From assembly GCA_965655095.1 (NCBI GenBank), contig OZ296652.1, positions 55,552,001-55,616,000 on the forward strand: 64,000 nt of DNA. Direction: 5' to 3'. The position numbers were made by a program, and so were the translations under genes. Below the pieces are notes generated by a model. The model saw only the letters and a program-made list of their open reading frames with translations, made no database searches and had not been told where the DNA came from. This document shows positions 1 to 36,983 of this stretch, piece after piece (position 1 is the first letter of the stretch; every line of letters starts with the position of its first letter). Origin of the DNA: Haplodiscus bocki (lineage: Eukaryota).

Positions 1-769
1 CATTTTTGCATATTTTTGGATTTTTCTCGCCAACGGTTGTGTTTAGAGGGTCGAGTGTGGAGTGCAAAAACGATCAGCGTCGGCCAGGGGTTACGGGGGG
101 TATTTTTGTTTTGGGCCACATTTTCCCCCCTAAAAGTTCACTCCCAGCTCACGCCCCCTATAGGGGTAAATGTCCAAAAAGTCGGTGAAGGAGTGCTCGT
201 AGCGTGTCCATGCATAAGGGATGATTTGCATGACTACTGGAGTGCTTTCCAGTGATATAGTTGTTTTGTGCATCGGTTTTCCCCCCTGGGAGACTATGCC
301 CGAAATGTAGTTTTTTGGGCAGTTAGACTGTTTTTTGAGGGGAAGTGAAGGGGTTTGGAGGCATGGATCGTATAGGCAATAATATGCGGCGCGTGCAGGC
401 GAATCAGGGGAACCCATTTACGCCCTCTGTTTATGCCCGCTACGCAACATTTTTGCCCGCTGCGCAACATTTTTGCCCGCTACGCAACATTTTTGCCCGT
501 TTTTCCGATTTTTGGTCCAGAGTCAGTATTTTACCGCAGATTTGCGCGCTTTTTGCGCCAAATCTGCGGTTGGACCACTCCAGTGGGCCTTCCTTGCTGC
601 TACGACAATTCCTGCCACCAACCAGAAATCCCCCTCCGGGTGGGGCACTCGCCCGGTTTCATCGTTCCCACTGTGTTGAGCCACACACGAAAGTCCGTTG
701 GCGCGCTGTCGCGCGCCGATCGTCTCAACTAAAGCCCTACTTGCCGGCAGGCGCCCCCATTCCCTCTAG

Positions 770-1763
770 GTGGGCGGGGGCCTCATTCCCCTCAGTATTT
801 GGGCAAGCGGGTAGGGTCCTGATTGCCCTCCTCAGTACCAGGTTTACGGATACAAAGCCCGGAGCTCAAAATGCTAACTTTTAAACTAACCGTAAGATTT
901 TGATGAGCGAGCGGCCCCCACCGTTTTTTTGGACGCTGATTACGATGGTAGCGGTCAAATTTTGATTGAAAACTCTGGGATCCCCATTTTTGCCCCTTTT
1001 TGGGGTAAAAACGCCCTTTTTTGCATATTTTGGAATTTTTCTCGCCAACGGTTGGTTTTAGCGGGTCGGGTGTGGAGTGCAAAAATGATCAGCGTCGGCC
1101 AGGCATTACGGGGGGTATTTTTGTTTTGGGCCACATTTTCCCCCCGTAAAAGTTCACTCCCCAGCCCACGCCCCTTTTAGGGGTAATTGTCCAAAAAGTC
1201 GGTGAAGGAGTGCTCGTAGCGTGTCCATGCATGAGGGATGATTTGTAGTATTACTGGAGTGCTTTCCGCTGATATCCTTGTTTTGTGCATCAGTTCCCCC
1301 CCCTCGGAGACTATGCTCGAAATGTGGTTTCTTGGGCACGTAGACTGTTTTTTGAGGGGGAAGGAGTGCGTTTAGAGGCATGGAACGTATAAGCAATGAT
1401 ATGCAGCGTGTGCAGGCGAATCAGGGGAACTCATTTATGCCCTCTGTTCATGCCCGCTACCCAAAGTTTTTGCCCGCTACGCAAATTTTTCGCCCATTTT
1501 TCCGATTTTTGGTCCAGAGTCACTTTTTTACCGCAGATTTGCGCGCTTTTTGCGCCAAATCTGCGGCTGGACCACTCCAGTGGGCCTTCCCTGCTGCTAC
1601 GACAGCAGTTCCTGTCACCAATCAATCCCCCCTCGGGGGGGGGGCACTTCCGGTTTCATCGTTCCCACTGTTGAGCCACACAGGAAAGTCCGTTGGCGCG
1701 CTGTCGCGCGCCGATCGTCTCAACTAAAGCCCTACTTGCCGGCTTTGCCGTCATCTTTTCTAG
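770..1763 (+). mobile_element. Representative ~1 kb non-autonomous unit (type A), an internal-deletion-type relative of the 13.7-kb element
   Basis: The first ~800 bp are homologous to 20195-~20990 and the last ~90 bp match 33831-33920. About 15 complete copies of 848-1019 bp lie in the array. No credible coding capacity. Confidence 0.85.
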
Positions 1764-2611
1764 GTGGACGGGGGCCTCATTCCCCTCAGTATTTGGGCAA
1801 GCGGGTAGGGTCCTGATTGCCCTTCTCAGTACCAAGTTTACGGATACAAAGCCCGGAGCTCAAAAATGCTAACTTTTAAACTAACCGTAAAATTTTGATG
1901 AGCGAGCGGCCCCCACCGTTTTTTTGGACGCTGATTACGATGGTAGTGGTCAAATTTTGATTGAAAACTCTGGGATCCCCATTTTTGCCCTTTTTTGGGG
2001 TAAAAACGCCCATTTTTGCATATTTTCGAATTATTCTCGCCAACGGTTGGTTTTAGCGGGTCGGGTGTGGAGTGCAAAAATGATCAGCGTCGGCCAGGGG
2101 TTACGGGGGGTATTTTTGTTTTGGGCCACATTTTCCCCCCTAAAAGTTCACTCCCCAGCCCACGCCCCCTATAGGGGTAAATGTCCAAAAAGTCGGTGAA
2201 GGAGTGCTCCTAGCGTGTCCATGCATGACAAGCAATGATATGCAGCGTGTGCAGGCGCATCGGAGGAACCCATTTCCGCCCCCTGTTCATGCCCGCTACG
2301 CAAAGTTTTTGCCCGCTACGCAAAATTTTCGCCCGTTTTTCCGATTTTTGGTCCAGAGTCACTTTTTTACCGCAGATTTGCGCGCTTTTTGCGCCAAATC
2401 TGCAGCTGGACCACTCCAGTGGGCCTTCCCTGCTGCTACGACAGCAGTTCTTGTCACCAATCAATCCCCCCTCGGGGGGGGGGGGGGCACTTCCGGTTTC
2501 ATCGTTCCCACTGTTGAGCCACACAGGAAAGTCCGTTGGCGCTGGCGCGCTGTCGCGCGCCGATCGTCTCAACTAAAGCCCTACTTGCCGGCTTTGCCGC
2601 TTCTTTTCTGG

Positions 2612-4034
2612 GTGGTCCGGGAGCGTCCCCCTACCTCATCCGGCCGCCTGGGGAGGGTCCCAGATCCGGCCCCCTCTTTCTGAATTTTGATAGATGAAAT
2701 TTCGAGGGTATAATTGCGATTTTGGAAACTAACCCGCCGATTTTTTTAATTTTTTGCATACGGCCAGATATGACAGATCTAAGAACTAATCCCTACTGGC
2801 GTTTTTCCGAAATATGAACCGAAGTTGGTTTTTTGGCCATTTTTTGGTGCAAAAATGACGTTTTTTCGAAAAATTGGCAGTTTTTCGCCTCAAAGTCCAA
2901 TTTCGTCCACACAACTAGATTAGCAAGTGCGTGCATGCGAAAAGTACGTCAACTGGCAAGAACAATAAGCACTAGAACGCTGGTCTACGACAAGTTTGCG
3001 TGGACTTATGATATTTTGAATGTGTGCAAAAAACGTGCGAAAAGCGTAATTTGCAAACATAACGTCACATAACTCGATAACAATGATGTTTAGCGGTCCA
3101 CTGTGGGAGCACTTTTTTGTTGCCAATCTATAGCGGAACAAATGTTGTGAACAAAAAGTTCCTTAGAAAATTCTACGAAAAAAGTTATAACCGTTTTTTT
3201 GGGCGAAAAACCGACTTTTTTCGAAAATTTTCGCAAAATAGTCGAAGTGTTTGCATTTTTTCGCAAACCTAGATATGGAGACCACCATAATCGCATTAGG
3301 CAGCCCAAGGGCAGCACTACACCAGGGTTAGACAGTTTTTTCAAAATTAATTTCAAGATTTTGATTTTTTCGGCTGTCAATTTTGTCTCGAGAGAGAAAA
3401 AACAAAAAAGACAATTTCGTCCAAAACCCACCATAACTTCTTTCAGCGGCTGTTTGGCTGCTAAATTCATCTTTAACAAAACGTTTGGCACATAACGTGA
3501 AAGCCGGCCGCAAGTTTTGAGGTTTCTTTGATTGGCCAAAAAAAAGTAAATTCATTTCAATTACTGATTTTTTGACCCTTGGCGAAAATTGTGGGAAGAG
3601 TTCAAATACAAATCGAAGTAAAACTTTCTTGGCCAACAAAATACGTCTTCGCAGGATCACAGAAGCCTCCAACAGAAGCTCTGGAGGTTGGTGAGCCGTT
3701 TCCCATCGACCCCAGGGCGATGGAACGGCGAACATATATTAAAAAAGGAAGCGAAAACAAAAAAATTTTTCACCTCTGTGTGGTTTTGATGGTAACCACT
3801 GATTCGAAAACGCCGTTTAGGCCTTGCAGTCGGCTGCTAAACTACACCGTAGGTGTTGAATTGTTCACCGGGACCGGGCTTGAATGATGTAGAGGGAGTG
3901 CGAAGGCACATTTCGTACAGTTTTCCAGTCGACCGACGAAAGTCGGTTATACACAATTGTGTAAAAGTAAATCAAAAACTGTCTGAAATGCACCGTGCAA
4001 GCGGCCCTAGTGTGAGTTCAGCCTCCAGCGCTAG
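2612..4034 (+). mobile_element. Divergent 1423-bp unit (type B) with diverged but structurally equivalent termini
   Basis: Starts GTGGTCCGGGAGCG and ends GCCCTAGTGTGAG...GCGCTAG, flush with its neighbours. The internal part (from ~2880, GTCCACACAACTAG...GCATGCG) is homologous to ~14960-15830 and ~19400-19910. Confidence 0.75.
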
Positions 4035-7000
4035 GTGGGCGGGGGCCATATTCCCCTCAGTATTTGGGCAAGCGGGTAGGGTCCTGATTGCCCTTCTCAG
4101 TACCAGGTTTACGGATACAAAGCCCGGAGCTCAAAAATGCTAACTTTTAAACTAACCGTAAGATTTTGATGAGCGAGCGGCCCCCACCGTTTTTTTGGGC
4201 GCTGATTACGATGGTAGTGGTCAATTTTTGATTGAAAACTCTGGGACCCCCCCTTTGCCCCTTTTTGGGGTAAAAACGCCCATTTTTGCATATTTTTGGA
4301 TTTTTCTCGCCAACGGTTGGGTTTATCGGGTCGGGTGTGGAGTGCAAAAACGATTAGCGTCGGCCAGGGGTTACGGGGGGTAATTTTGTTTTTGGCCACA
4401 ATTCCTCCCCTAAAAGTTGACTCCCCAGCCCACGCCCCTTTTAGGGGTAAATGTCCAAAAAGTCGGTGAAGGAGTGCTCGTAGCGTGTCCATGCATAAGG
4501 GATGATTTGTAGTACTACTGGAGTGCTTTCCAGTGATATAGTTGTTTTGTGCATCGGTTCCCCCCCCCCTCGGAGACTATGCCCGAAATGTAGTTTTTTG
4601 GGCAGTTAGACTGTTTTTTGAGGGGAAGTGAAGGGGTTTGGAGGCATGGATCGTATAGGCAATAATATGCGGCGCGTGCAGGCGAATCAGGGGAACCCAC
4701 TTACGCCCTCTGTTTAAGCCCGCTACGCAACATTTTTGCCTGCTACGCAACATTTTTGCCCGTTCTTCCGATTTTTGGTCCAGAGTCACTATTTTACCGC
4801 AGATTTGCGCGCTTTTTGCGCCAAATCTGCGGTTGGACCACTCCAGTGGGCATTACTTGCTGCTACGACAATTCCTGCCTTCACCAATCAATCCCCCCTC
4901 AGCGGGGGGCACTCCCCCGGTTTCATCAATCCCACTGTGTTGAGCCACACACGAAAGTCCGTTGGCGCGCTGTCGCGCGCCGATCGTCTCAACTAAAGCC
5001 CTACTTGCCGGCAGGCGCCCCCACTCCCTCTAGGTGGGCGGGGGCCTCATTCCCCTCAATATTTGGGCAAGCGGGTAGGGTCCTGATTGCCCTTCTCAGT
5101 ACCAGGTTTACGGATACAAAGCCCGGAGCTCAAAAATGCTAACTTTTAAACTAACCGTAAGATTTTGATGAGCGAGCGGCCCCCACCGTTTTTTTGGACG
5201 CTGATTACGATGGTAGTGGTCAAATTTTGATTGAAAACTCTGTGACCCCCCCTTTTGCCCCTTTTTGGGGTAAAAACGCCCATTTTTGCATATTTTTGGA
5301 TTTTTCTCGCCAACGGTTGGTTTTAGCGGGTCGGGTGTGGAGTGCAAAAATGATCAGCGTCGGCCACGGATTACGGGGGGTATTTTTGTTTTGGGCCACA
5401 TTTTCCCCCCTAAAAGTTCACTCCCCAGCCCACGCCCCCTATAGGGGTAAATGTCCAAAAAGTCGGTGAAGGAGTGCTCGTAGCGTGTCCATGCATAAAC
5501 GATGATTTGTAGTACTACTGGAGTGCTTTCCGCTGATATCCTTGTTTTGTGCATCAGTTCCCCCACCCCCCCTCGGAGAATTTGCCGGAAATGTGGTTTT
5601 TTGGGCACGTAGACTGTTTTTTGAGGGGGAAGGAGTGCATTTAGAGGCACGGAACGTATAAGCAATGATATGCAGCGTGTGCAGGCGCATCGGAGGAACC
5701 CATTTCCGCCCCCTGTTCATGCCCGCTACGCAAAGTTTTTGCCCGCTACGCAAAAATTTCGCCCGTTTTTCCGGTTTTTGGTCCAGAGTCACTTTTTTAC
5801 CGCAGATTTGCGCGCTTTTTGCGCCAAATCTGCGGTTGGACCACTCCAGTGGGCCTTCCTTCCTGCTACAACAATTCCTGCCTTCACCAATCAATCCCCC
5901 CTCGGCGGGGGGCACTCCCCCGGTTTCATCAATCCCACTGTTGAGCCACACAGGAAAATCCGTTGGCGCGCTGTCGCGCACCGATCGTCTCAACTAAAGC
6001 CCTACTTGCCGGCTTTGCCGTCATCTTTTCTAGGTGGGCGGGGGCCATATTCCCCTCAGTATTTGGGCAAGCGGGTAGGGTCCTGATTGCCCTTCTCAGT
6101 ACCAGGTTTACGGATACAAAGCCTGGAGCTCAAAAATGCCAACTTTTAAACTAACCGTAAGATTTTGATGAGCGAGCGGCCCCCACCGTTTTTTTGGACG
6201 CTGATTACGATGGTAGCGGTCAAATTTTGATTGAAAACTCTGGGACCTCCATTTTTGCCCCCTTTTTGGGGTAAAAACGCCCTTTTTTGCATATTTTTGA
6301 ATTTTTCTCGCCAACGGTTGGTTTTAGCGGGTCGGGTGTGGAGTGCAAAAATGATCAGCGTCGGCCAGGGGTTACGGGGGGTATTTTTGTTTTGGGCCAC
6401 ATTTTCCCCCCTAAAAGTTCACTCCCCAGCCCACGCCCCCTATAGGGGTAAATGTCCAAAAAGTCGGTGAAGGAGTGCTCGTAGCGTGTCCATGCATAAG
6501 GGATGAATTGTAGTACTACTGGAGTGCTTTCCAGTGATATAGTTGTTTTGTGCATCGGTTTCCCCCCCTCGGAGACTATTCCCGAAACGTGGTTTTTTGG
6601 GCACTTAGACTGTTTTTTGAGGGGGAAGGAGTGCGTTTAGAGGCATGGATCGTATAGGCAATAATATGCGGCGCGTGCAGGCGAATCAGGGGAACCCACT
6701 TACGCCCTCTGTTTAAGCCCGCTACGCAACATTTTTGCCTGCTACGCAACATTTTTGCCCGTTCTTCCGATTTTTGGTCCAGAGTCACTATTTTACCGCA
6801 GATTTGCGCGCTTTTTGCGCCAAATCTGCGGTTGGACCACTCCAGTGGGCATTACTTGCTGCTACGACAATTCCTGCCTTCACCAATCAATCCCCCCTCA
6901 GCGGGGGGCACTCCCCCGGTTTCATCAATCCCACTGTGTTGAGCCACACACGAAAGTCCGTTGGCGCGCTGTCGCGCGCCGATCGTCTCAACTAAAGCCC

Positions 7001-10000
7001 TACTTGCCGGCAGGCGCCCCCACTCCCTCTAGGTGGGCGGGGGCCTCATTCCCCTCAATATTTGGGCAAGCGGGTAGGGTCCTGATTGCCCTTCTCAGTA
7101 CCAGGTTTACGGATACAAAGCCCGGAGCTCAAAAATGCTAACTTTTAAACTAACCGTAAGATTTTGATGAGCGAGCGGCCCCCACCGTTTTTTTGGACGC
7201 TGATTACGATGGTAGTGGTCAAATTTTGATTGAAAACTCTGTGACCCCCCCTTTTGCCCCTTTTTGGGGTAAAAACGCCCATTTTTGCATATTTTTGGAT
7301 TTTTCTCGCCAACGGTTGGTTTTAGCGGGTCGGGTGTGGAGTGCAAAAATGATCAGCGTCGGCCACGGATTACGGGGGGTATTTTTGTTTTGGGCCACAT
7401 TTTCCCCCCTAAAAGTTCACTCCCCAGCCCACGCCCCCTATAGGGGTAAATGTCCAAAAAGTCGGTGAAGGAGTGCTCGTAGCGTGTCCATGCATAAACG
7501 ATGATTTGTAGTACTACTGGAGTGCTTTCCGCTGATATCCTTGTTTTGTGCATCAGTTCCCCCACCCCCCCTCGGAGAATTTGCCGGAAATGTGGTTTTT
7601 TGGGCACGTAGACTGTTTTTTGAGGGGGAAGGAGTGCATTTAGAGGCACGGAACGTATAAGCAATGATATGCAGCGTGTGCAGGCGCATCGGAGGAACCC
7701 ATTTCCGCCCCCTGTTCATGCCCGCTACGCAAAGTTTTTGCCCGCTACGCAAAAATTTCGCCCGTTTTTCCGGTTTTTGGTCCAGAGTCACTTTTTTACC
7801 GCAGATTTGCGCGCTTTTTGCGCCAAATCTGCGGTTGGACCACTCCAGTGGGCCTTCCTTCCTGCTACAACAATTCCTGCCTTCACCAATCAATCCCCCC
7901 TCGGCGGGGGGCACTCCCCCGGTTTCATCAATCCCACTGTTGAGCCACACAGGAAAATCCGTTGGCGCGCTGTCGCGCACCGATCGTCTCAACTAAAGCC
8001 CTACTTGCCGGCTTTGCCGTCATCTTTTCTAGGTGGGCGGGGGCCATATTCCCCTCAGTATTTGGGCAAGCGGGTAGGGTCCTGATTGCCCTTCTCAGTA
8101 CCAGGTTTACGGATACAAAGCCTGGAGCTCAAAAATGCCAACTTTTAAACTAACCGTAAGATTTTGATGAGCGAGCGGCCCCCACCGTTTTTTTGGACGC
8201 TGATTACGATGGTAGCGGTCAAATTTTGATTGAAAACTCTGGGACCTCCATTTTTGCCCCCTTTTTGGGGTAAAAACGCCCTTTTTTGCATATTTTTGAA
8301 TTTTTCTCGCCAACGGTTGGTTTTAGCGGGTCGGGTGTGGAGTGCAAAAATGATCAGCGTCGGCCAGGGGTTACGGGGGGTATTTTTGTTTTGGGCCACA
8401 TTTTCCCCCCTAAAAGTTCACTCCCCAGCCCACGCCCCCTATAGGGGTAAATGTCCAAAAAGTCGGTGAAGGAGTGCTCGTAGCGTGTCCATGCATAAGG
8501 GATGAATTGTAGTACTACTGGAGTGCTTTCCAGTGATATAGTTGTTTTGTGCATCGGTTTCCCCCCCTCGGAGACTATTCCCGAAACGTGGTTTTTTGGG
8601 CACTTAGACTGTTTTTTGAGGGGGAAGGAGTGCGTTTAGAGGCATGGAACGTATAAGCAATGATATGCAGCGTGTGCAGGCGCATCGGAGGAACGCATTT
8701 CCGCCCCCTGTTCATGCCCGCTACGCAAAGTTTTTGCCCGCTACGCAAAAGTTTTGCCCGTTATCCCGATTTTTGGTCCAGAGTCATTATTTTAACGCAG
8801 ATTTGCGCGCTTTTTGCGCCAAGTCTGCGGCTGGACCACTCCAGTGGGCCTTCCCTGCTGCTACGACAGCAGTTCCTGTCACCAATCAATCCCCCCTCGG
8901 GGGGGGGGGGGCACTCCCCTGGTTTCATCGTTCCCACAGTGTTGAGCCACACACGAAAGTCCGTTGGCGCTGGCGCGCTGTCGCGCGCCGATCGTCTCAA
9001 CTAAAGCCCTACTTGCCGGCAGGCGCCCCCATTTTCTCTAGGTGGGCGGGGGCCATATTCCCCTCAATATTTGGGCAAGCGGGTAGGGTCCTGATTGCCC
9101 TTCTCAGTACCAGGTTTACGGATACAAAGCCCGGAGCTCAAAAATGCTAACTTTTAAACTAACCGTATGATTTTGATGAGCGAGCGGCCCCCACCGTTTT
9201 TTTGGACGCTGATTACGATGGTAGCGGTCAAATTCTGATTGAAAACTCTGGGACCCCCATTTTTGCCCCTTTTTGGGGTAAAAACGCCCATTTTTGCATA
9301 TTTTTGGATTTTTCTCGCCAACGGTTGGTTTTAGCGGGTCGGGTGTGGAGTGCAAAAATGATCAGCGTCGGCCAGGGGTTACGGGGGGTATTTTTGTTTT
9401 GGGCCACATTTCCCCCCCCTAAAAGTTCACTCCCCAGCCCACGCCCCCTATAGGGGTAAATGTCCAAAAAGTCGATGAAGGAGTGCTCGTAGCGTGTCCA
9501 TGCATACGGGATGAATTGTAGTACTACTGGAGTGCTTTCCGCTGATATCCTTGTTTTGTGCATCAGTTCCCCCCCCCCCTCGGACAATTTGCCGGAAATG
9601 TGGTTTTTTGGGCACTTAGACTGTTTTTTGAGGGGGAAGGAGTGTGTTTAGAGGCATGGAACGTATAAGCAATGATATGCAGCGTGTGCAGGCGCATCGG
9701 AGGAACCCATTTCCGCCCCCTGTTCATGCCCGCTACGCAAAGTTTTTGCCCGCTACGCAAGATTTTCGCCCGTTTTTCCGATTTTTGGTCCAGAGTCACT
9801 TTTTACCGCAGATTTGCGCGCTTTTTGCGCCAAATCTGCGGTTGGACCACTCCAGTGGGCCTTACCTGCTGCTACGACAGCAGTTCCTGTCACCAATCAA
9901 TACCCCCTCGGGGGGGGGCACTCCCCCGGTTTCATCGTTCCCACTGTTGAGCCACACAGGAAAGTCCGTTGGCGCGCTGTCGCGCGCCGATCGTCTCAAC

Positions 10001-10039
10001 TAAAGCCCTACTTGCCGGCTTTGCCGTCATCTTTTCTAG

Positions 10040-13000: not shown

Positions 13001-13693
13001 GTTGGTTTATTGGCGCAAAAACAGAGAAAATGACTTTTTTGACACTGTCGCATGTATTATTTGATAACGTTGACAGAAGTTTTTGAAAGATAAATTACGT
13101 TAGTTTTGTTAATAATTTGCATCAAGTAGAGCAAAGCAGTGTATTTTTGTGCTACTAAATTGAGAGTAAAATGGATGGAACCTTGGATAGAAACAAAGTT
13201 TGAGCCTTGGAACAAAATGATCTCTCAATATCGTTGTGTTTAACCACATTAGAATTGTAAAAAATGTGTTTTGCTTTACCGGTGTTTGTTAAATCCAAGC
13301 GGTGATGATCGGGTGTCACTTGTGTCAAATTGTTAAAAACCAGATCATCTGTCTCCAAAAGTAGCCTTGTTGTCGTTGTTTTCTTAAAAGACCGAGTTTT
13401 TCATTAGTGAATGCGAATTTTGGTACGAGGCCGTCTGTTGAAAAGATGAAATCAAAGCTTATCAATCTCGAAGTTTTTCATTGGCAATTGAAACCTTTTG
13501 GGAGATCTATATGTAGTAGTGCATTGCTCTATTGTTCCTATGGCAGCTAATCAATCCCCCCTCGGGGGGGGGGGCACTTCCGGTTTCATCGTTCCCACTG
13601 TTGAGCCACACAGGAAAGTCCATTGGCGCGCTGACGCGCGCCGATCGTCTCAACTAAAGCCCTACTTGCCGGCTTTGCCGTCATCTTTTCTAG
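10040..13693 (+). mobile_element. 3654-bp unit with a diverged 5' terminus, ~3.4 kb of AT-rich cargo and a type-A 3' end
   Basis: 5' end GTGGGCGGGGGCCGTTCCCCC...GGTAGGGTCCTG. Rejoins type-A sequence at ~13548 (AATCAATCCCCCCTCGGGG). Confidence 0.7.
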
Positions 13694-21944: not shown

Positions 21945-22048
21945 ATATGATAAGATAGGATAAAGTAAGATAGGATAGGATAGGATAGGATAGGATAGAA
22001 TAGGATAAAATAGGATAGAATAAGATAGGATAAGACGATACGATAAGA
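21945..22048 (+). repeat. Imperfect (GATAG/GATAA)n pentanucleotide microsatellite
   Basis: GATAAGATAGGATAAAGTAAGATAGGATAGGATAGG..., immediately upstream of the Rep-helicase ORF. Confidence 0.9.
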
Positions 22049-22086
22049 TTGTGTAGTATTAAATCAAACTGTTTGTTAATTATTAT

Positions 22087-28000: not shown

Positions 28001-28803
28001 ATTTTCTTCAACATTTCGTTAGAATGTGGGATACTGAGGGTAAAGAACTTTTGGAGAAAATGTCGTTAAAACCCATTTCACATCAAGATATCACCTGGAT
28101 AAAAAATGTCATTAGCAAACGCTGCACATTTGTTGATTCCTGGAAGGATGTCACCGACTGCACTTGCATGAAAGTGTTTGGAAAAAAAGAAGCTGAGCGC
28201 GAAGCAGTCAATTTGTTCCGCCAGTCCCTAGTCTCAAAAGGAACAACCTTTGTGGAGCTTTCAGCTGAAGATGAAATGTGTCCTCGACTCTCTAATACTT
28301 GGCTACCAGCTGATCAACGTTCATCTGAGTTTTTAGATAATCACTGCAGAGAACCTCGAAAAGTAATACTGACTGCAAATTGCTTGTTAAGATTGACTGT
28401 GAACACTGAGAATTTGTGCCAAGGCCAAATACTGATCTTAGCGGAAATGCCATCACCAGGTGATAAATGCATCGTTGTCTTCGTTGCTCCAAGTCTGGAA
28501 GCCGTTTCTGACCCAAGTCTGTTCACATCGTCTAAGTTTAAGTGCTGGCGTAAAACACGAATCAACACAACGATTGGTTTCGCTTTTGCAAAAGGTGATG
28601 TTTCTGTTCGACGTACCCAACTACCTGTGTCGAACTACGTTGCTCTCACATGTCACAAATTAATGGGAGACACGTTCGTTAAAATTGCTACGCAAGTCTC
28701 TTTGGTAGATCGGAAGTACAGTCTCTGGATGGCGTCGCAGCTCTATGTGATTATCAGTCGCGTCAACGATTTGAAAAACGTCACTTTCGTGGGATGCAAG
28801 TAA
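22087..28803 (+). CDS. Helitron-like Rep-helicase transposase (HUH Y2 endonuclease + PIF1-family SF1B helicase); start may be the ATG at 22123
   Basis: 2238-aa ORF. Rep motif 1 TLFLTLT (~25375), motif 2 GRTEFQ..GNLPHYHLLLW (HYH at 25642-25650) and motif 3 YLNKY (26155-26169). Helicase Walker A GKPGAGKS (27556), Walker B LLIEEIG (~27810), FGGLFVLANGDTNQLP, ALTCHKLMGDT and YVIISRV. Basic N-terminus (MVRRSKKKSRSRSR) and several Cys/His clusters. Confidence 0.95.
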   Translation: MSLLKFSLLTAAMVRRSKKKSRSRSRNTRGEFSRTTTDIDNFLVDANYESQTDVFTVEASVEFEALDSFDDRIIDSRNSSQEEPVNIDQEHEAAFFDCFDISSQFDLASSSGTELPGGELSEQEKLPDCVDEVFEKFGDTMNVLKRVDTKALSERKRFLVDPNVLVNTCDKCYRESTDTYPLDIQPTNTLNVNNNLYFGAPLVNNSSSKICSLCTRYLSCRQWKYAWAAVLCTLLFFGSHLGCNGEYFFSLLPCTFSSSWQSAAVNAGFNDMSLPLFNDFTVIEHDFTVLIEQKKAKALKYGLNFFTFPFVKCPYGCSAQVSAVGQTTFKHMLNFLFPLFTAFKANRRRLRGMRQDFLTGILHLKLFMSSPCLAVDDNGLNLVTCSLHNNAINKSFIHIASSPFGNLIHPHADRLGLIGTKLRSVTPSKVGVFSNSYTMATSVGGAEGISAVQLSSSRLLNIKSPQLLPQTESLFVNYRVDLHNFLRNLQNNHEIDENFVLSLFDCSDLPSVSNVETHIKSSTYITLFSMLSLHTFLKNTTSLKTCIPPSLIISHNPDSFGAKPFFPPASFLRKNISFFVLCQWFTNFEFFGHMLLNICNTHQFLFSYLSTLFKGYPVPLTRGVDLTCKTFSLAPHSFYQDTNFNLLAQVVESLPFCELVYCPTRSHILQIDTQSGITSSNVKVHAIVIVCNEGWSRPFDVPEYILLFGKNYRLVNVGGQDLNEIFLRYGGSFEHWWQFTVSNHVCTKTSPGFVFPPNLKRNWRFLLYLDNYRQLLDQTSCLQFFSTQDFVHCTEHSVPLSTDLNDTLYKCSVSGCSRKSRWRCPKVDCSACCCLKHFRAFSGRNQVVFVSPSDFVDYQRDSAESSSSLRSDGNFVEKADYEEFSFEGLNETGLFNEPLLQSEATYNTPLTENASSENVVPLHILFNKALPIFRRSGGKPDTLSKKFLRFFQNFVASNPGEIVSFLQVESLLCPSLFYYQLSEGNFGGALPYFLYNNTRFNSQLMFASLYEHIFARITNMELPVAGNIKYLFMLTDALLNVNLHQTVTSSFFKRGVQNIEIAGQKMNSFSDSIKYTLTDSEKNVKELAAAMRDNKPTLFLTLTLNQKEHFGVSPLIKAIESLFPDKTSEKYRACMQTYMPVILRMWSLTVDHLIKYLLESGENLLGEIVNIWGRTEFQSLIGNLPHYHLLLWLENIALEELQDLVASTKKHLRFKFDELFRSELQIVKNTQDMERIFESFEKIHTHTCEKGNNRCMKKVDAQGNKVCRFPPYQPSNITWLKEIPQSFSDEAMKILLEVGLAEGDMDDFELVQEMKCHKFSYPATNKDHIMPNSPRLFALTLSSGNVLLITEKMASKYLNKYAAGKEEHAEVLVSAGTSEKRMKFNVGLIENKKITGVSINSEKQKSSVRQTKGISALHVSQTEFLWWTLKLPSVITTFDFVHVPSVSLENRGAILKKGEKIDTVETTSIAPFLIVRESLNLPAECCFTSNQKTVIEDIEKSILTVDKVTKFSVRPPQLLFVRQLKQYYSFFLVAKTLRSKTELVASLTKTPIPWVDGLNAMIKLRPSSVDEMRNFVNEAIGKGIATADVFLFEQVLDNLHVDAYRKTFLYIKNDISRSPAVVVFSDVKPTLCFKFLLHLLYTMGEFSTEIDLFNEVDLRGCFVKAKILPAGQLSNVDALSLLKRYIREQLFFLPGGNVSFSNKIVAAHDAIKSLVLDNCVEPLKFPAVLMQTLTETLESNIQSTFQQAQEKLFDSIRPKNVSNLPLNKTYPFHKVWFPDFNKMRIQTDRSFHEQAAILDNVLTAMTKFLKKRCYNFTKNHVIMGKPGAGKSHVSGVCILFGLMNGLNCYVTSLAARRAAMFNCEHIHRLFCIGINKNYDVASESEKALKKLSNKPEKRALLMSLDVLLIEEIGLVSAELLTVMDLVLQRLRDNNTFFGGLFVLANGDTNQLPTIEGTDVFLSPTLIFQFRCHFLQHFVRMWDTEGKELLEKMSLKPISHQDITWIKNVISKRCTFVDSWKDVTDCTCMKVFGKKEAEREAVNLFRQSLVSKGTTFVELSAEDEMCPRLSNTWLPADQRSSEFLDNHCREPRKVILTANCLLRLTVNTENLCQGQILILAEMPSPGDKCIVVFVAPSLEAVSDPSLFTSSKFKCWRKTRINTTIGFAFAKGDVSVRRTQLPVSNYVALTCHKLMGDTFVKIATQVSLVDRKYSLWMASQLYVIISRVNDLKNVTFVGCK

Positions 28804-28869
28804 GCCAAAGTTTCTTAGGGTATAAGATGTTTTCCAAATTATGTCTCCTAACAGTTCTAATAATTTAAG
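28800..28869 (+). other. Predicted 70-nt spliceosomal intron fusing the helicase to the downstream ORF
   Basis: The GTAAGC donor overlaps the ORF stop, with CTAAC branch-like motif at 28848-28852 and TTTAAG acceptor. The splice gives ...GGA TGC AA|G CAG GAA in frame. An alternative acceptor at 28854 is also in frame. Confidence 0.7.
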
Positions 28870-29389
28870 GCAGGAAACCCTTGCTGCTGTAGAGCAAATA
28901 CTCCAAAAAACAACCCCGAAGGAACTCCAAGTTCAGGAACGATTTCAATTTTTGAAGAGGATGAGGTCTAACAATGGTGTAACCATCGACATAAACGACG
29001 TTTCATACATTCCCTATCGGGTTGATGTTCCTTTAGTGCCTCTTGGCTTCGTCTATCTTCTGGTTAGCGTTAAGCACGGACGTTTCAACATATGCTTTGT
29101 GGACGAAACTGAGGGGAACCTTCTGGCTGATTTAAGTAGACATAGTTCAGGACAATTTGACTGTTTAACACAACGGAAAGACTTGAGGCCTTGGGCTGTT
29201 GCTGCCTTCTGCTACGGTTTTGAAGTTGAACATCAGCGTGAGGACTTGAAGCAACAAATTGAAAGCGTTCTACATTTAGGTTTCCGCGTCGATACAATAG
29301 TTGATGAATTCGAGAAAAATTGCAAAAGCGGAAATTTTGGCGTTCTAACCTTTGTTAAATGTGGTTCCTTGATGACATATTACAACTGA
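28870..29389 (+). CDS. SLX1-like GIY-YIG nuclease domain, probably the C-terminal exon of the transposase; degenerate active site
   Basis: GFVYLLVS...CFVDETE..LLADLSRHSSG...T...LRPWAVAAFCYGF follows the SLX1-type pattern YxLxS...YIGxT..xxRLxxHNG...RPWxxxxxxxGF. Confidence 0.7.
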
Positions 29390-29901
29390 GCAGTGGAAAC
29401 TGATTTAAAAATATTTCTTCATTTAAAATGTTGTAGAGATTTAAACTGAAAATGACTTCTGTTTCTGTAATGTTGAAAATTTGAGTTTTGATGTTTAAAT
29501 TATGTGACTGAAAATGAAAGAAATTTGCTGCATGTATATACAAAACCGGAATTGTGGCATTTATTTTTCGTGCACTGAAGAAGGGACGTATTCCGCAAAA
29601 TGTGTTTTCAAGTGACATCATGTCATGTCAAGAGGTTGAATGAATGTTCGGTTATTTGTTCGTGCATTCTCGAATGCAAAACTTTGTTTTGCAGCTCTTC
29701 TTAATGTATTTGAAATTTCCATCCAAATCTTCATCGTAAACAGCTTCCGGTGCAATTGAAAGTTTATTTCTTGGCTACAACGAAAACATCAATGTTGACC
29801 TTTTTTTGAATATTTAGTTGTTTTCTGCGGTTGAAAAATGATGATGACAACAGTTGAACTTGGTCCTGCTTCAACTGGAACTCAATTTCTTAGACGAAAT
29901 A

Positions 29902-30984
29902 ATGCCTGCTGGTTACATTAAAACTGGAAAAAGTGTTGATGCTGTTCTACATGAAGTGGAGACGAAATTCGAGGAGAGGCAAAATAATGAAGTTATTGAC
30001 GATGAAATTTTTATTCCCAACCGCTTTAAATTGAAGTGTGTATTCTTATATTCTACAGCCGGGCAAAAAAAAATTAGTTTCTTCAAATCAAATAAAAACA
30101 ACTCCAAAATCCGAAGTCAGGAGGTTTCTAGTTACGACCGCTTCGTAGTTCTTGGGGTCGATGGCACCCAACATGTGTTACTGGCTTTGACCAACAGCTC
30201 TGAGGAATCCAGCAGACTACTGAATTTCAAAACCTTGAAGCCGGGCCAACCTGTCTGGATTCTGAGCCCGAAAGTGATAGGTTACCTGAAAGGAACACAA
30301 AATCCCCTAATTAGAACAGGAGATCCGTTGGTACCTTGTCCGCGGTCCAACCAATTTAGTTTGTCGCCCAGTGACGTTAATATCAGCAATTATGTGTTTT
30401 TCGATTTCTTGGCAACAAACTTGAGAGTCACACAGGCAGTGCCGCTTGATAATGTCTGTCGAGGGAAGCTTTGCGACTCGCAATGTAAGCCAACCAACTG
30501 TCCATGTCTTGTAGCAGAAACAAAAAAACATTGGGCACTTTCAGTGACTTTCAGCTGTGACGAGTTCAGCGAAGGTTTAGAGGAAGAGGAAGTTACCATC
30601 ACTTCCATGCAGCTGACGAAAGCTCTCATACACAGTTCTAAGAAATCGCATCAGCTAGTAAATGAAGAAATAGACACTTATGAGATGGAGGATGCTGTTT
30701 GTCGCCTCTGCACTTCCATCAACGCTGAACAAAAGTTCAGGGTTATCGGTTGGTTCAAGCCAGCGCAAACGGAGGAGGGGACAGTAGCCTCGGGTCACTT
30801 TGCATACCATATCTGCTCGTTAATTCCGCACGCGGATTTGAATGATAATCAGCAAGCACTTATGTACGGAGCGCCCGTGACATTTTTCAACGCGGCTACT
30901 GTGGATGTTGGATGTGTCAACCGTACCCCTTCTGGAGGGGTGATTGTGCCCGCTGGTCCGTCGTCATCTACAGATGGGTGTTAG
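29902..30984 (+). CDS. Hypothetical ~360-aa element-borne protein with a Cys cluster (CRGKLCDSQCKPTNCPC)
   Basis: Long uninterrupted ORF inside the element with protein-like composition. The ATG at 29902 is preceded by TTTCTTAG. Family not recognised with certainty. Confidence 0.8.
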   Translation: MPAGYIKTGKSVDAVLHEVETKFEERQNNEVIDDEIFIPNRFKLKCVFLYSTAGQKKISFFKSNKNNSKIRSQEVSSYDRFVVLGVDGTQHVLLALTNSSEESSRLLNFKTLKPGQPVWILSPKVIGYLKGTQNPLIRTGDPLVPCPRSNQFSLSPSDVNISNYVFFDFLATNLRVTQAVPLDNVCRGKLCDSQCKPTNCPCLVAETKKHWALSVTFSCDEFSEGLEEEEVTITSMQLTKALIHSSKKSHQLVNEEIDTYEMEDAVCRLCTSINAEQKFRVIGWFKPAQTEEGTVASGHFAYHICSLIPHADLNDNQQALMYGAPVTFFNAATVDVGCVNRTPSGGVIVPAGPSSSTDGC

Positions 30985-31252
30985 ACATCTGCAATGCCTC
31001 AGAGCCGTGGTTGCCGCCGTTATTGGAATTTATGAAAACACAAAACAACAACCAATCACTGAAACATGTCGCTCTGAATGATTCAACTTTTCTAATCAGA
31101 CACTTTAATTTTCCTGTTGCCTATTCCATTCTCTTTAAGCGTTAAATAGGAAAGTTCTGCAAGACGCAATTCCTTACGTGTCAAAACTTTTCGTACCACA
31201 TTTGGTAGTCGTAAAAGTATTCACAGCTCTATGTGAAGTGCTTGGTAATCAG

Positions 31253-31289
31253 CAATATCCTGGCTGTATAAGATACAGCCAGGATATTG
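31253..31289. other. Perfect 17-bp inverted repeat with a 3-nt loop
   Basis: CAATATCCTGGCTGTAT-AAG-ATACAGCCAGGATATTG. Confidence 0.95.
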
Positions 31290-32511
31290 ACTGCATCACT
31301 GTTGTCATCAGCTTTTTGTGTCGACACAGTTAAACTTTAGACGTGTCCATTAGCCACTTGGCGCCGGCAGATGTTTTATATAGATGAAATTTTTTTGAGC
31401 GCCTCACTATTTTTTGCCTTGTTTTGGAACTACTACACGCAATGTTTTTTGACGAGGAAAAAGTTTTCCCATCTGGCATGACGGGGAAGTGGATGATGTC
31501 TTGGAGTTTTTTTGTTGAGGGCCTTTCAACTCCAGATTGTGGCCAGATATTTGTAGCCGTAGAGAAATGGAAATTTCACTGAGCAACGATTATCTTTAAA
31601 TTCGCGTAAGTTTCACAGTTGCACCCTGAGTTGATGAACTGTTGATACAATCCGATATTTTTGCAGAATAACCTAACTCTCAACTTGTTGCAGAAAATAC
31701 TATTTGAAGGTTGTTCGAAAATTGTGTGGTAATTCTGTTGTGAAACACTTATCCAAAATTTTTTGTCTTCAAAAATGTATATCTATGTAAAACTCGATGA
31801 TCGAATGTATGTCAAAGCAACAGTTTCAACGAAATATTGAGACAGGGACAGAAGGATGAAATACACCTCACATAACATTGCAAGCTGTTTAGCTCAATCC
31901 AAAAACAACGCTGTGGTGTTTTAAGGAAATCCTCATACATGCAAGCATGAGGCAAGTCTGTACACGTAAATTGAATTCTGAATTTACAATTATCAACAGT
32001 TTGAGTTGGCCATGGAGAAATCATAAGTGCAATTTTTTGAGAAAATTAATTTCTGATACAGCTGATATGGACCAGTGGCTAAAGTGACAAGACATTGTGT
32101 TCGACATCTTGTTCTTAACTTTGGTTACCCTTCTCATATGAGCGCCAGCTTTTTTTTAGTTGCACCCTGCGTGACTTCAATGTTGAAAAATGATTCAAGT
32201 AAAGCATTGAAACTTTTGAAAAAATCCCGTAGGATGTTTTCTGTCGCATTTGAGAGCAAAAAATTGAAATTAGGGTTAGTCTTTAGGCTGTGTTAACGTT
32301 AATAGAAAGAATAATCAATAACCAAGCGATAACGTGACTAGCTGTGTTCGAAAAATCAGCGAATAGTAGTCTTGAAAACACATAAACAATTTTTCACATT
32401 TGAATGGAATTTTCTAATTCCATTAGAATTAAAAGAACGTAGGTTCATGAATTGTTGATATATTCTACTCAAACGCAAAGGCTCGAGCCATTTCGAAAAC
32501 TTTAAACATGT

Positions 32512-32790
32512 GAGGCTTGTCTGTTAGAGGCAGCATGCCTAACAGATGAAACGCTGCTTTTGGCTTGTCTGTTGGAAACAGCTTGCCTAAGACATGCAAG
32601 GTTGCGGTTGGCTTGTCTGTTGGAAATAGCATGCCTAAGTTTTGAGAGTTTGCATTTGACTTGTCTGCCCAAAGCAGCTAGTCTAAAATATGCATTTTTA
32701 ATGTTGGCTTGTCTGTTCGAAGCAGCATGCCTTAGTTTTGAGAGTTTGCATTTGACTTGTCTGCCCAAAGCAGCTGGTCTAAAACATGTT
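32512..32790. repeat. 48-bp minisatellite, ~6 copies
   Basis: RCTTGTCTG anchors at 32515, 32563, 32611, 32659, 32707 and 32755. Open on both strands as 16-aa repeats. Confidence 0.9.
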
Positions 32791-35700
32791 GGACATGAGC
32801 AGCTGGCCACAAACGGTGTCAAATTTTGGGCACACCTATCGTTACCTTCAGTCAATCCACTTCACCGGCAGACAAATGGTTCCTAAGGGCGAAATGCTGC
32901 AGGACGACGGGCGCCATATAGCGTGTTGAAAATTTACAAAACTGAAGACAATATCCCATGTGGTTTGTACATGAAATATGTTTTGAAATCTATGAAATAA
33001 AAGAGCATCTGTGAAACAGTCCCTACTTGTTCAACAATTGCAGGTCTGAAAAAAATATGCTCTGTAAAAGCAGATTAGATTAAGTGTTGTGTGATTTCTT
33101 CATTGAATTAATTAGACTCGATTGAATTAATGGTGTATCAGTAATTATGCGAGAACAATCTAATCCAGTGTGTTTATAGACCTGTTCTCCCAATCTCCTA
33201 ATGGAAAGTAAGGTATTCAAAAGATTTACTGCGTGGTCTCCTCCCACATCCGGAATCGATGCAAGTTTCGACATATTCACAAGGTTAGTTGTCTTTCATC
33301 GAAATGTGCAAACGTTAGTCAGTGCAAGCTGCTTCATGTTTGTGATCAAAAGAAACTCTCAGCTGATATTTCTTCTCGTAAATTTTACAGGTGATTAGAA
33401 ACCTCGATTGATACGACACAGTCCTTAATCCGAATAAAGATTATTGACAGAAGGTTGTCAGTTGAAGTTCAACGAAAACTTTAGTCGCACAAGTTCATTT
33501 GCTGTGTCTGGAAGAACATGAAATTTTTATTAAACATCTATTTGTTCTTTTATGATCGATCGACTGGTTGGCAAAGACCAATTGGAGAAGTGATATGGAG
33601 TTTATGCCTATCAAGGATTGGTTAGTTTTGCGTACGATATACAAAACTTAAGATTCCATCAATGAAACAAAAAAATGATTTCGAAACCCAAAGGTTTACT
33701 TTTTTAAAACCATTTCGTTGACTGAACTCATCAAGTCTACTCCATTATGTAACATTGATGGCAGTGATTTCAAAAAACTTTTGGGTACAGGAAAAACAAA
33801 TTTTTGTCAAGACGTGCGCCCTAACCTTATGCCACACTCGAAAGTCCGTTGGCGCGCTGTCGCGCGCCGATCGTCTCAACTAAAGCCCTACTTGCCGGCT
33901 ATGCCGTCACGCCCCTCTAGGTGGGCGGGGGCCATATTCCCCTCAATATTTGGGCAAGCGGGTAGGGTCCTGATTGCCCTTCTCAGTACCAGGTTTACGG
34001 ATACAAAGCCCGGAGCTCAAAAATGCTAACTTTTAAACTAACCGTAAGATTTTGATAAGCGAGCGGCCCCCACCGTTTTTTTGGACGCTGATTACGATGG
34101 TAGCGGTCAAATTTTGATTGAAAATTCTGGGACCCCCCCCTTTTGCCCCTTTTTGGGGTAAAAACGCCCATTTTTGCATATTTTTGGATTTTTCTCGCCA
34201 ACGGTTGGTTTTAGCGGGTCGGGTGTGGAGTGCAAAAATGATCAGCGTCGGCCAGGGGTTACGGGGGGTATTTTTGTTTTGGGCCACATTTCCCCCCCTA
34301 AAAGTTCACTCCCCAGCCCACGCCCCTTTTAGGGGTAAATGTCCAAAAAGTCGGTGAAGGAGTGCTCGTAGCGTGTCCATGCATAAGGGATGATTTGTAG
34401 TACTGCTGGAGTGCTTTCCAGTGATATAGTTGTTTTGTGCATCGGTTTCCCCCCCTCGGAGACTATGCCCGAAATGTAGATTTTTGGGCAGTTAGACTGT
34501 TTTTTGAGGGGAAGTGAAGGGGTTTGGAGGCATGGATCGTATAGGCAATAATATGCGGCGCGTGCAGGCGAATCAGGGGAACCCACTTACGCCCTCTGTT
34601 TATGCCCGCTACGCAACATTTTTACCCGCTACGCAACATTTTTGCCCGCTACGCAACATTTTTGCCCGTTTTTCCGATTTTTTGTCCACAGTCACTATTT
34701 TACCGCAGATTTGCGCGCTTTTTGCGCCAAATCTGCGGTTGGACCACTCCAGTGGGCCTTCCTTGCTGCTACGACAATTCCTGCCACCAACCAGAAATCC
34801 CCCCTCCGGGTGGGGCACTCGCCCGGTTTCATCGTTCCCACTGTGTTGAGCCACACACGAAAGTCCGTTGGCGCGCTCTCGCGCGCCGATCGTCTCAACT
34901 AAAGCCCTACTTGCCGGCAGGCGCCCCCATTCCCTCTAGGTGGGCGGGGGCCATATTCCCCTCAATATTTGGGCAGGCGGGTAGGGTCCTGGCTGCCCTC
35001 TATGTACCTAAGTTTACTGTCTCCGAGCTTGGGGTAAAAAATGCTAACTTTTAAACTAACCATAAGAATTTGATGAGAGAGCGGCCCCCACTGTTTTTTG
35101 GACGCTGATTACGATGGTAGTGGTTAAAATTTGATTGAAAACTCTGGGACCCCCCCTTTCACCCCTTTTTGGGGTAAAAACGCCCATTTTTGCATATTTT
35201 TGGATTTTTCTCGCCAACGGTTGGGTTTAGAGGGTCGAGTGTGGAGTGCAAAAACGATCAGCGTCGGCCAGGGGTTACGGGGGGTATTTTTGTTTTTGGC
35301 CACAATTCCCCCCCTAAAAGTTGACTTCCCAGCCCACGCCCCTTTTAGGGGTAAATGTCCAAAAAGTCGGTGAAGGAGTGCTCGTAGCGTGTCCATGCAT
35401 AAGGGATGATTTGTAGTACTACTGGAGTGCTTTCCAGTGATATAATTGTTTTGTGCATCGGTTTCCCCCCCTGGGAGACTATGCCCGAAATGTAGTTTTT
35501 TGGGCAGTTAGACTGTTTTTTGAGGGGAAGTGAAGGGGTTTGGAGGCATGGATCGTATAGGCAATAATTTGCGGCGCGTGCAGGCGAATCAGGGGAACCC
35601 ACTTATGCCCTCTGTTGATGCCCGCTACGCAACATTTTTGCCCGCTACGCAACATTTTTGCCCGCTACGCAACATTTTTGCCCGTTTTTCCGATTTTTGG

Positions 35701-36952
35701 TCCAAAGTCACTATTTTACCGCAGATTTGCGCGCTTTTTGCGCCAAATCTGCGGTTGGACCACTCCAGTGGGCCTTCCTTGCTGCTACGACAATTCCTGC
35801 CACCACCAATCAATCCCCCCTCGGGGGGGGCTCTCCCCCGGTTTCATCGTTCCCACTGTGTTGAGCCACACACGAAAGTCCGTTGGCGCGCTCTCGCGCG
35901 CCGATCGTCTCAACTAAAGCCCTACTTGCCGGCAGGCGCCCCCATTCCCTCTAGGTGGGCGGGGGCCATATTCCCCTCAATATTTGGGCAGGCGGGTAGG
36001 GTCCTGGCTGCCCTCTATGTACCTAAGTTTACTGTCTCCGAGCTTGGGGTAAAAAAATGCTAACTTTTAAACTAACCATAAGAATTTGATGAGAGAGCGG
36101 CCCCCACTGTTTTTTGGACGCTGATTACGATGGTAGCGGTCAAATTCTGATTGAAAACTCTGGGACCCCCACTTTTGCCCCTTTTTGGGGTAAAAACGCC
36201 CCTTTTTTGCATATTTTGCAATTTTTCTCGCCAACGGTTGGTTTTAGCGGGTCGGGTGTGGAGTGCAAAAATGATCAGCGTCGGCCAGGGGTTATGGGGG
36301 GTATTTTTGTTTTGGGCCACATTTTCCCCCCCAAAATTTCACTCCCCAGCCCACGCCCCCTATAGGGGTAAATGTCCAAAAAATCGGTGAAGGAGTGCTC
36401 GTAGCGTGTCCATGCATACGGGATGAATTGTAGTACTACTGGAGTGCTTTCCAGTGATATAGTTGTTTTGTGCATCGGTTTCCCCCCCTCGGAGACTATG
36501 CCCGAAATGTGGTTTTTTGGGCACTTAGACTGTTTTTTGAGGGGGAAGGAGTGTGTTTAGAGGCATGGATCGTATAGGCAATAATATGCGGCGCGTGCAA
36601 GCGAATCAGGGGAACCCATTTATGTGCTCTGTTTATGCAGGCTACGCAACATTTTTGCCCGCTACGCAAAAGTTTTGCCCGTTATTCCGATTTTTGGTCC
36701 AGAGTCATTATTTTACCGCAGATTTGCGCGCTTTTTGCGCCAAATCTGCGGTTGGACCACTCCAGTGGGCCTTCCCTGCTGCTACGACAGCAGTTCCTGT
36801 CACCAATCAATCCCCCCTCGGGGGGGGGCACTCCCCCGGTTTCATCGTTCCCACTGTGTTGAGCCACACACGAAAGTCCGTTGGCGCGCTATCGCGCGCC
36901 GATCGTCTTAACTAAAGCCCTACTTGCCAGCAGGCGCCCCCATTCCCTCTAG

Positions 36953-36983
36953 GTCCACAACGGCGTTACCAATGGACTTAGAG
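36953..36983 (+). CDS. Putative 31-nt exon of the sialyltransferase (VHNGVTNGLR-G)
   Basis: Bounded by the array's final ...CCCTCTAG and by AG|GTAATT. Its phase-1 end joins 37296 in frame. VHNGVTNG occupies the position of the MNxAPTxG segment of sialylmotif L. Confidence 0.55.

Follow-up and report, generated by a model that had tools for sequence, protein, structure and literature searches.

Mixed-family arrays of Helitron-like elements in Haplodiscus bocki joined at one hexamer, CTAG|GT, the probable origin, terminus and target of their units

Introduction

Tandem arrays of Helitrons have been described in bat, Drosophila, rice, maize and cnidarians, where they are ascribed to rolling-circle amplification (PMC5148889, PMC12001565, PMC11934779). 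Helitron-like elements insert between host A and T in the HLE1 group and between host T and T in the HLE2 group, for which the domain DUF6570 upstream of Rep has been proposed as a marker (PMC11417382), and telomeric repeats are the proposed target of Paramecium Helitrons (PMC13085455). Here we analysed a stretch of 64,000 nucleotides from Haplodiscus bocki (GenBank assembly GCA_965655095.1, contig OZ296652.1, positions 55,552,001 to 55,616,000 of the forward strand; hereafter the window), which opens with a head-to-tail array of Helitron-like units that includes an autonomous copy. Units meet at CTAG|GTG (the bar marks the junction), and the sequence comparisons below indicate that one strand-specific hexamer, CTAG|GT, probably serves this group of families as initiation site, termination site and integration target alike. 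Tandem arrays of Helitrons are already known; the new aspect is the probable self-stacking at a shared hexamer. In a limited literature search we met no account of a six-base target identical with the joined ends, of cassette-like arrays of mixed families, or of a Rep-Pif1-GIY-YIG lineage.

Results

The array and its junctions

Units were delimited by motif search and BLAST, and their coordinates are collected in Table 1. The window matches a metagenome contig in ENA, with 99.94% identity across the 26.7 kb compared, and a neighbouring stretch of that contig (L005) was used for the left end of the array, which starts at L005 2256, 6365 bp (~6.4 kb) before the window opens. The whole array measures 43.3 kb and holds 27 units, all on one strand and joined at CTAG|GTG with no spacer. 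Its left edge and further loci were located by way of spurious open reading frames (ORFs) of units that a homology search had turned up; leftward extension with the exact product of ORF 345-884 gave no recorded match. Tandem Repeats Finder missed the array because its longest period was 500.

The motif CTAGGTGGG occurs 18 times in the window, always on the + strand, against a chance expectation of 0.21, and CTAGGTGG occurs 19 times. A first-pass annotation of the window had counted 21 unit ends; these resolve into the motif matches, one degenerate junction, CTGG|GTGG at 2611|2612, and the array edge at 36952|36953. Units abut with no spacer bases between them, as it had also stated, and apart from the hexamer that they share there is no target-site duplication. 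Across 135 kb of array DNA in eight stretches, 67 of the 68 occurrences of CTAGGT on the + strand are unit starts with the 5' stem-loop motif described below, and the remaining one marks the host edge. Unit interiors contain none, against seven on the - strand. All 67 unit starts read GTG, and the units end in CTAG throughout, with one CTGG. CTAG alone was considered as the target and rejected, 35 internal CTAG in the array being unused.

Unit lengths of 0.85, ~1.0, 1.07, 1.41, 1.42, 3.65 and 13.7 kb agree with those first reported, and at least five unit families stand within the one array. The ~1-kb family contributes 14 units in the window and 21 of the 27 in the whole array, 90-100% identical over their full length by BLAST. 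The description of the units as sharing only or mainly their termini applies to the minority; it fails for the ~1-kb units, which are homologous end to end. The autonomous unit has its first 728 bp and its 3' end in common with the 1-kb units (BLAST), and since both ends are shared the 1-kb units are deletion derivatives of it. The 1.42-kb unit lacks the GC hairpin of the 1-kb family, yet keeps the CTAG end. Over the first 37 kb, G+C is 51% across the ~1-kb units and about 40% elsewhere. Two array members, U12 (5034-6033) and U14 (7033-8032), both of 1000 bp, are identical; U11 (4035-5033) and U13 (6034-7032) differ by 4%. A simple duplication of a 2-kb dimer at 4035-10039, where the tails alternate, was considered and rejected: U12 equals U14, but U11 and U13 sit in different clades.

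Gain or loss of units at junctions

In four filled/empty comparisons within the same genome, a foreign unit fits precisely into a junction, and not one base is added or missing. In an array of 3.5-5-kb units (L006) the junction ...CGACCGCTAG|GTGCGCGGGG is found four times, and in a single instance a 990-bp member of the 1-kb family separates its two halves exactly. L009 carries a 2492-bp unit that is absent from L008, between flanks that are 92-94% identical. The junction at window 10039|10040, empty here, is occupied in L011 by a 1435-bp unit, the flanks on its two sides matching at 98% and 99.9% identity, and in L012 a 1.43-kb unit stands within an array of 1255-bp units. The breakpoints of these events are ambiguous within the shared CTAGGT(G). 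On this comparative evidence, units are shown to have been gained or lost exactly from junction to junction. The whole of L011 is an 11.3-kb contig nearly identical to window 6178-13551 plus one extra unit, and it holds a full-length 6.2-kb unit where the window has the 3.65-kb deletion form.

In a maximum-likelihood tree of 30 one-kb units, those from L008 and L009 fall inside clades of window units with 97-100% support. Adjacent units are 93.4% identical, against 93.0% for all pairs (permutation p = 0.24).

The edges of the array towards host DNA read ...TTCCTAG| on the left and |GTCCAC... on the right, and the left edge of another array reads ...AAACTAG|. As the two edges carry the two halves of the hexamer, removal of the array would leave CTAGGT in the host, that is, an empty site. 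Consecutive exons of the Glyco_transf_29 domain lie on either side, which shows that the flanks are genuine host sequence and that the array fills an intron of a sialyltransferase gene, in the orientation of that gene; only ~320 bp of ordinary intron is left beside it on each side.

Table 1. Coordinates of the array, its units and neighbouring features (positions in the window unless a locus is named)
Feature	Position	Strand	Remarks
Head-to-tail array, right-hand 37 kb	1-36952	+	Motif search and BLAST
Example junction hexamer CTAG|GT	766-771	+	Motif search
Junctions, first group	after 769, 1763, 2611 (degenerate), 4034, 5033, 6033, 7032, 8032, 9041, 10039	+	
Junctions, second group	after 13693, 14693, 16105, 17109, 18128, 19127, 20194, 33920, 34939, 35954	+	
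Host edge of array	after 36952	+	
0.85-kb unit	1764-2611	+	Internal-deletion derivative of 1-kb unit; ends at degenerate CTGG|GTGG
1.42-kb unit	2612-4034	+	Separate non-autonomous family; 5' GTGGTCC..., own 3' tail
Reference ~1-kb non-autonomous unit	4035-5033	+	First ~730 bp plus last ~70-270 bp of autonomous unit
Conserved 5' stem-loop of unit	4066-4093	+	Stems covary between families; loop G(T/G/A)(A/C)GGG
3' subterminal GC hairpin	4964-4981	+	GGCGCGC-TGT-CGCGCGCC; ends 52 nt before unit end
3' inverted copy of unit's own 5' terminus	5015-5024	+	Similar to an asymmetric terminal inverted repeat (ATIR)
3.65-kb unit	10040-13693	+	Deletion derivative of 6.2-kb non-autonomous family in L008-L011
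1.41-kb unit	14694-16105	+	Termini of 1-kb family; other interior, in common with 19128-20194
1.07-kb unit	19128-20194	+	Interior family that of 14694-16105
Autonomous 13.7-kb unit	20195-33920	+	BLAST and ORFs
Rep-helicase, intact 2238-aa ORF	22087-28803	+	Cys-rich N-terminus ~950 aa; HUH Y2 Rep at residues ~990-1400; Pif1-like SF1B helicase
ORF2, 182 aa	28841-29389	+	Homologue of relatives' C-terminal GIY-YIG domain, E = 2e-23 (pairwise comparison)
ORF3	29854-30984 (Met 29902)	+	Predicted RPA-like fold, several OB domains
Internal 48/96-bp tandem repeat	32514-32788	+	3' non-coding part of autonomous unit
Host intron flank, right of array	36953-37279	+	Begins with GT
Host sialyltransferase exon	37280-37843	+	Pfam Glyco_transf_29 positions 90-269
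Preceding sialyltransferase exon	L005 1269-1940		Left of array; Glyco_transf_29 positions 35-92

Terminal structures

The 5' stem-loop lies at unit positions ~32-59 and was tested across 16 families from two samples. Its stem positions pair in 91% of cells, against 71% after shuffling, and 0 of 500 shuffles reach 91%. The covariation score is 0.57 against 0.24, and structures slid by 1-3 columns score far lower. Within the conserved loop GGGTAGGGTCC (window 4076-4084) stands TAGGGT, similar to the junction TAG|GT, which might act as a further site of recognition or cleavage or else as a decoy.

The GC hairpin, placed ~50 nt from the end in the first-pass annotation, stands at 52 nt in the 1-kb family and at about 50-55 nt in the other hairpin-bearing families; the 3' hairpins themselves are family-specific. 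It is followed, about 7-23 nt before the end depending on the family, by a short inverted copy of the sequence with which the unit itself starts. In a single-stranded DNA fold, the tail pairs with the next GTGGGCGGGGGC, giving a hairpin whose loop has CTAG on its 3' side. Tail and 5' end change together between families, as in the pairs GCCCAC/GTGGGC, GCCAC/GTGGC, TTGACC/GGTCAA, CAACC/GGTTG and GCAC/GTGC. There are two main variants of the 3' tail (for example 5013-5033 and 6014-6033), which by eye appear homologous: several C-to-T changes in the "A" tail AGGCGCCCCCA(C/T)TCCCTCTAG would give a sequence like the "B" tail TTTGCCGTCATCTTTTCTAG, and such changes would preserve G-T pairing with the G-rich 5' end.

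Insertion at junctions weighed against concatemers and recombination

Tandem Helitron arrays in plants, bats and cnidarians have a published explanation (PMC5148889, PMC12001565, PMC11934779) that would dispense with junction targeting. Unterminated rolling-circle multimers would integrate once, the hexamer being merely the joined ends, and unequal crossing-over, gene conversion and microhomology-mediated deletion at CTAGGTG would later shuffle, delete and duplicate units. Such a history would account for the increased lag-2 and lag-4 similarity, for the duplication of a four-unit block and for the identity of U12 and U14, and it explains a filled/empty pair equally well by precise loss. Concatemers, however, start out identical, and neighbouring units here are no closer than random pairs. 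The arrays also mix families with unrelated interiors and different hairpins. Recombination over 6-8 bp would have needed to be exact four times, and random integration would not provide the hexamer halves that are found in host DNA at both edges. The absence of + strand CTAGGT from unit interiors is a further point against this history. We therefore regard concatemers and recombination, acting with no targeting of junctions, as an unlikely explanation of the arrays.

Several observations nevertheless weigh against the use of one hexamer as origin, terminus and target. The evidence is comparative throughout, and each filled/empty pair may represent either a gain or a precise loss. The inserts in L009 and L011 are related and stand beside the same 6.2-kb family, so that they may not be independent events; L011 has a coverage of 11.8x, against 37-80x for the other seven contigs of its sample, and may be a second or minor haplotype, a subpopulation or an assembly variant. 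Similarity between units is raised at lag 2 and at lag 4, and the four-unit block U16-U19 (window 9042-16105) resembles U20-U23 (16106-20194). Recombination in the form of block duplication is thus also a contributor to array growth. The terminal-inverted-repeat statistic is modest (4.71 against 4.27 paired bases), though above all 200 shuffles. Host edges number one on the right and two on the left, so that a single case, with a chance of 1 in 16, speaks for the requirement for GT. Finally, the window's 27 kb of host DNA contain five unoccupied CTAGGT, so either the hexamer is insufficient alone or insertion is rare.

Taken with these reservations, the earlier proposal that the elements target their own junction is supported by the shared termini, the host edges, the four filled/empty junctions, the interleaved tree and the comparison of neighbours. 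It needs amendment in that the target would extend beyond the element's own junction to the hexamer as such, copies in host DNA among them. The accompanying claim that the array did not arise by unequal crossing-over alone is likewise supported, with block duplications (lag 2 and lag 4) nonetheless contributing.

The autonomous unit and its proteins

That one unit encodes an intact HUH-Rep/PIF1 protein had been recognised from the sequence, and the 2238-aa ORF does contain the H-Y-H, Y-x3-Y and Walker A motifs. Its Pfam matches are weak (Helitron_like_N 4.6e-7, PIF1 1.2e-5). In 21 relatives that align with the protein over its full length, the Cys-rich N-terminal ~950 aa included, the HUH and Y-x3-Y residues are (nearly) invariant. 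When the Rep region was modelled with AlphaFold (mean pLDDT 68), the Helraiser transposase was its sole significant structural match (7lcc_A, E = 6e-6). The family profile matches Pif1 helicases, and the Helraiser helicase scores weaker than bacterial Pif1. The autonomous protein is a zinc-finger/HUH-Rep/Pif1 protein. Pfam searches at E up to 10 returned nothing for the N-terminal 959 aa, ORF2 or ORF3, and no recombinase domain was found among the three ORFs of the unit.

The second motif (YIG) of ORF2 is degenerate, the second tyrosine motif being lost, and the same is true in the second sample. Rep-helicase and ORF2 are separated by a stop codon and 37 nt (window 28801-28841) and are fused in more distant relatives; the second sample has a similar split with a gap of ~285 nt (L003 16702/16988). 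ORF3 is 57% identical to the gene in the corresponding place in the second sample, and its product is predicted, from its modelled fold, to resemble RPA.

GIY-YIG homing endonucleases are established, and a nuclease-driven homing process could be imagined here. It would begin with a double-strand cut at CTAGGT, made by the GIY-YIG protein or some other nuclease; repair would then copy a unit in, and the Rep-helicase would only replicate the element. The homology of ORF2 to this domain, and the presence of the domain at the C-terminus of 16 of the 18 more distant relatives, speak for such a role. ORF2, however, has lost the second tyrosine motif in the window and in the second sample, and yet near-identical variants differing by one unit exist. 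Homing moreover needs flanking homology, and foreign units share with their neighbours only the hexamer and a few bases; the strict strand orientation suits a single-strand HUH reaction. Homing is in our judgement quite improbable, and cleavage by the Rep-helicase at the hexamer is the reading we retain.

Relatives and their termini

A search with a Rep-domain profile returned 376 cluster representatives at E <= 1e-30. The C-terminal GIY-YIG domain is present in 7 of the 21 full-length relatives and in 16 of the 18 more distant ones. Neither an AP endonuclease (Exo_endo_phos) nor DUF6570, the HLE2 marker, was found in any of these 39 clade proteins (21 + 18), and a search of the N-terminal 959 aa with E values up to 10 gave no DUF6570 match either.

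In the same genome, a Rep family 39% identical to the one in the window, with a fused GIY-YIG domain, starts at CTAG|GTGCC and ends in ...CGTCTAG; it sits in arrays of its own 1255-bp derivatives and other families. The second sample contains Rep-helicases that are 50-57% identical and bounded by CTAG|GTGCGGGGGGG. These elements share the 5' stem-loop (loop GGGTAGGGTCC), carry a 3' hairpin that lies ~55 nt ahead of CTAG, and likewise adjoin other units head-to-tail.

The termini of these relatives bear on the possibility that an unrelated Rep-helicase element inserted by chance into a pre-existing satellite, which the first-pass annotation would have inferred from Rep copies with different termini elsewhere. 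The ~1-kb units do dominate the array and are satellite-like. The 39% and 50-57% families, however, combine CTAG|GTG ends with this 5' stem-loop and with a 3' hairpin, and because these other Rep families share the termini, that test does not overturn the link between protein and array. The 1-kb units also occur at several loci beside other families. In other respects, too, the arrays depart from a satellite: one array alone holds at least five families, neighbours are no closer than random pairs, and units interleave between loci. A chance insertion into a satellite is hardly credible on this evidence, and we continue to read the Rep-helicase unit as the autonomous member of the array.

Elements of the second sample contain tandem repeats of ~503 bp in the stretch that leads from their 5' end to the Rep gene (L003 2449-4139; L002 3737-6922). 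Their interpretation as mini-units of ~0.5 kb was rejected, as they are without a junction and internal to the element; like the repeats of Helentrons, they count as satellites within an element. Related autonomous elements are located at or near contig ends in L002, L003, L004 and L012, from two assemblies, which suggests that such arrays break long-read assemblies.

Other features of the window

Rfam and tRNA scans of the window gave no matches. A degraded stretch resembling a long terminal repeat retrotransposon occupies 57800-64000 (+), with broken ORFs, a reverse-transcriptase match at 60162-60860 and an integrase zinc-binding domain at 61829-62389. A run of 172 N is found at 46019-46190, and by coordinate offset the 98.7-kb ENA contig would end ~45 bases earlier; the window appears to be a scaffold joining two contigs.

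Discussion

By analogy with Helraiser, IS608 and rolling-circle origins, we infer the following sequence of events. Rep would nick the + strand at CTAG|GT, the helicase would peel the strand off 5' to 3', and the second tyrosine would cleave at the next recognised CTAG|GT. Joining of the ends would give a circle whose junction hairpin displays the hexamer, and this circle could be pasted into another CTAG|GT in single-stranded DNA. Each insertion would recreate the hexamer on both sides, and the hairpins flanking the junction presumably bind Rep, so that existing junctions would be the best targets, in preference to bare host hexamers. With junctions preferred, unrelated non-autonomous and autonomous copies would stack gap-free and co-oriented. 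A skipped terminator would make several units move together, and ordinary unequal exchange may later duplicate blocks.

Beside runaway rolling-circle replication, the sequence evidence indicates a second cause of tandem Helitron arrays. Since the target equals the joined ends, each insertion would yield two new targets. If this is true, it would explain the origin of mixed "satellite" arrays with transposon-like units and why assemblies break there, it would introduce among the Helitron-like elements a lineage that targets six bases and bears a GIY-YIG module, and it would offer a compact test system (a hexamer, two hairpins and a Rep-helicase) for site choice by HUH transposases. More tentatively, these families could represent a deep, unclassified Helitron-like lineage, with a zinc-finger region, Rep, Pif1 helicase, GIY-YIG and an RPA-like partner, that uses one hexamer as origin, terminus and target, and whose autonomous and unrelated non-autonomous units, even those of 39%-identical Rep lineages, form integron-like cassette arrays. 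Should this broader view hold, the arrays would show transposons turning into satellite DNA directly by enzyme action, and eukaryotes would possess a natural system of site-specific single-strand DNA insertion.

Comparison with known systems

The elements have a two-tyrosine HUH Rep fused to an SF1B Pif1-like helicase in one protein, insert in a specific orientation with no target-site duplication, and have termini common to autonomous and non-autonomous copies. The group is clearly Helitron-like, but it lacks some defining features of HLE1 and of HLE2 alike.

With HLE1 (Helraiser/Helibat) it has in common the fusion of Y2 HUH Rep and Pif1-like helicase, the structural match of Rep to 7lcc, a 3' hairpin, orientation-specific insertion with no target-site duplication, an RPA-like accessory gene, non-autonomous derivatives with shared termini, and reported tandem arrays. 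The 3' end belongs in this list as well, for CTAG, which had first been taken for a non-canonical end, fits the canonical Helitron CTRR. The differences from HLE1 are a 5' GTG instead of TC, the target CTAG|GT instead of insertion between host A and T, and a hairpin 52 nt from the 3' end instead of ~10-15 nt. The 5' stem-loop, the short terminal inverted repeats, the weak Helitron_like_N match (4.6e-7), the ~950-aa Cys-rich N-terminal region and the membership of a clade with GIY-YIG also set the group apart.

HLE2, including "HLE2-reverse" and proto-Helentron (PMC3627910, PMC11417382), resembles it in a nuclease domain after the helicase (found here in the clade), in tandem repeats in or around the elements, and in the CTAG end of proto-Helentron. 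The 5' hairpin, which covariation supports, and the short inverted copy of the 5' terminus near the 3' end, for which the overall statistic is modest, may be further points of likeness. In contrast to HLE2, the target is not between host T and T, the inverted copy follows the 3' hairpin and does not precede it, DUF6570 is lacking in the 39 proteins, and GIY-YIG replaces the AP endonuclease, itself a feature of Helentron only. The telomere-capping Helitrons of Paramecium (PMC13085455) offer a parallel. They form a divergent clade, separate from HLE1 and HLE2, for which a sequence-specific target has been proposed, and they keep a strict orientation and have satellites associated with them. The target proposed for them is a telomeric repeat at chromosome ends, whereas here it is an internal hexamer, and the array lies in the intron of a gene.

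Outside the Helitrons, short specific targets are cleaved on single-stranded DNA beside hairpins by the bacterial HUH insertion sequences IS200/IS605 and IS91 and at rolling-circle origins, and the origins of plasmids and viruses use a single nick sequence for start and stop (reviews PMC5714925, PMC10288648). IS200/IS605 and IS91 have no fused helicase, and in IS608 the left cleavage site, which equals the target, differs from the right one, so that copies of IS608 do not stack. Cassette arrays of integrons are alike in that circular units with unrelated contents are inserted serially at a short core on a folded single strand, giving gap-free, co-oriented arrays with an identical core at each boundary. 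In integrons the reaction is carried out by the tyrosine recombinase IntI at attI and attC, whereas here a HUH Rep-helicase is the candidate enzyme, the host is a eukaryote and the units are non-coding and transposon-derived; the resemblance is functional only.

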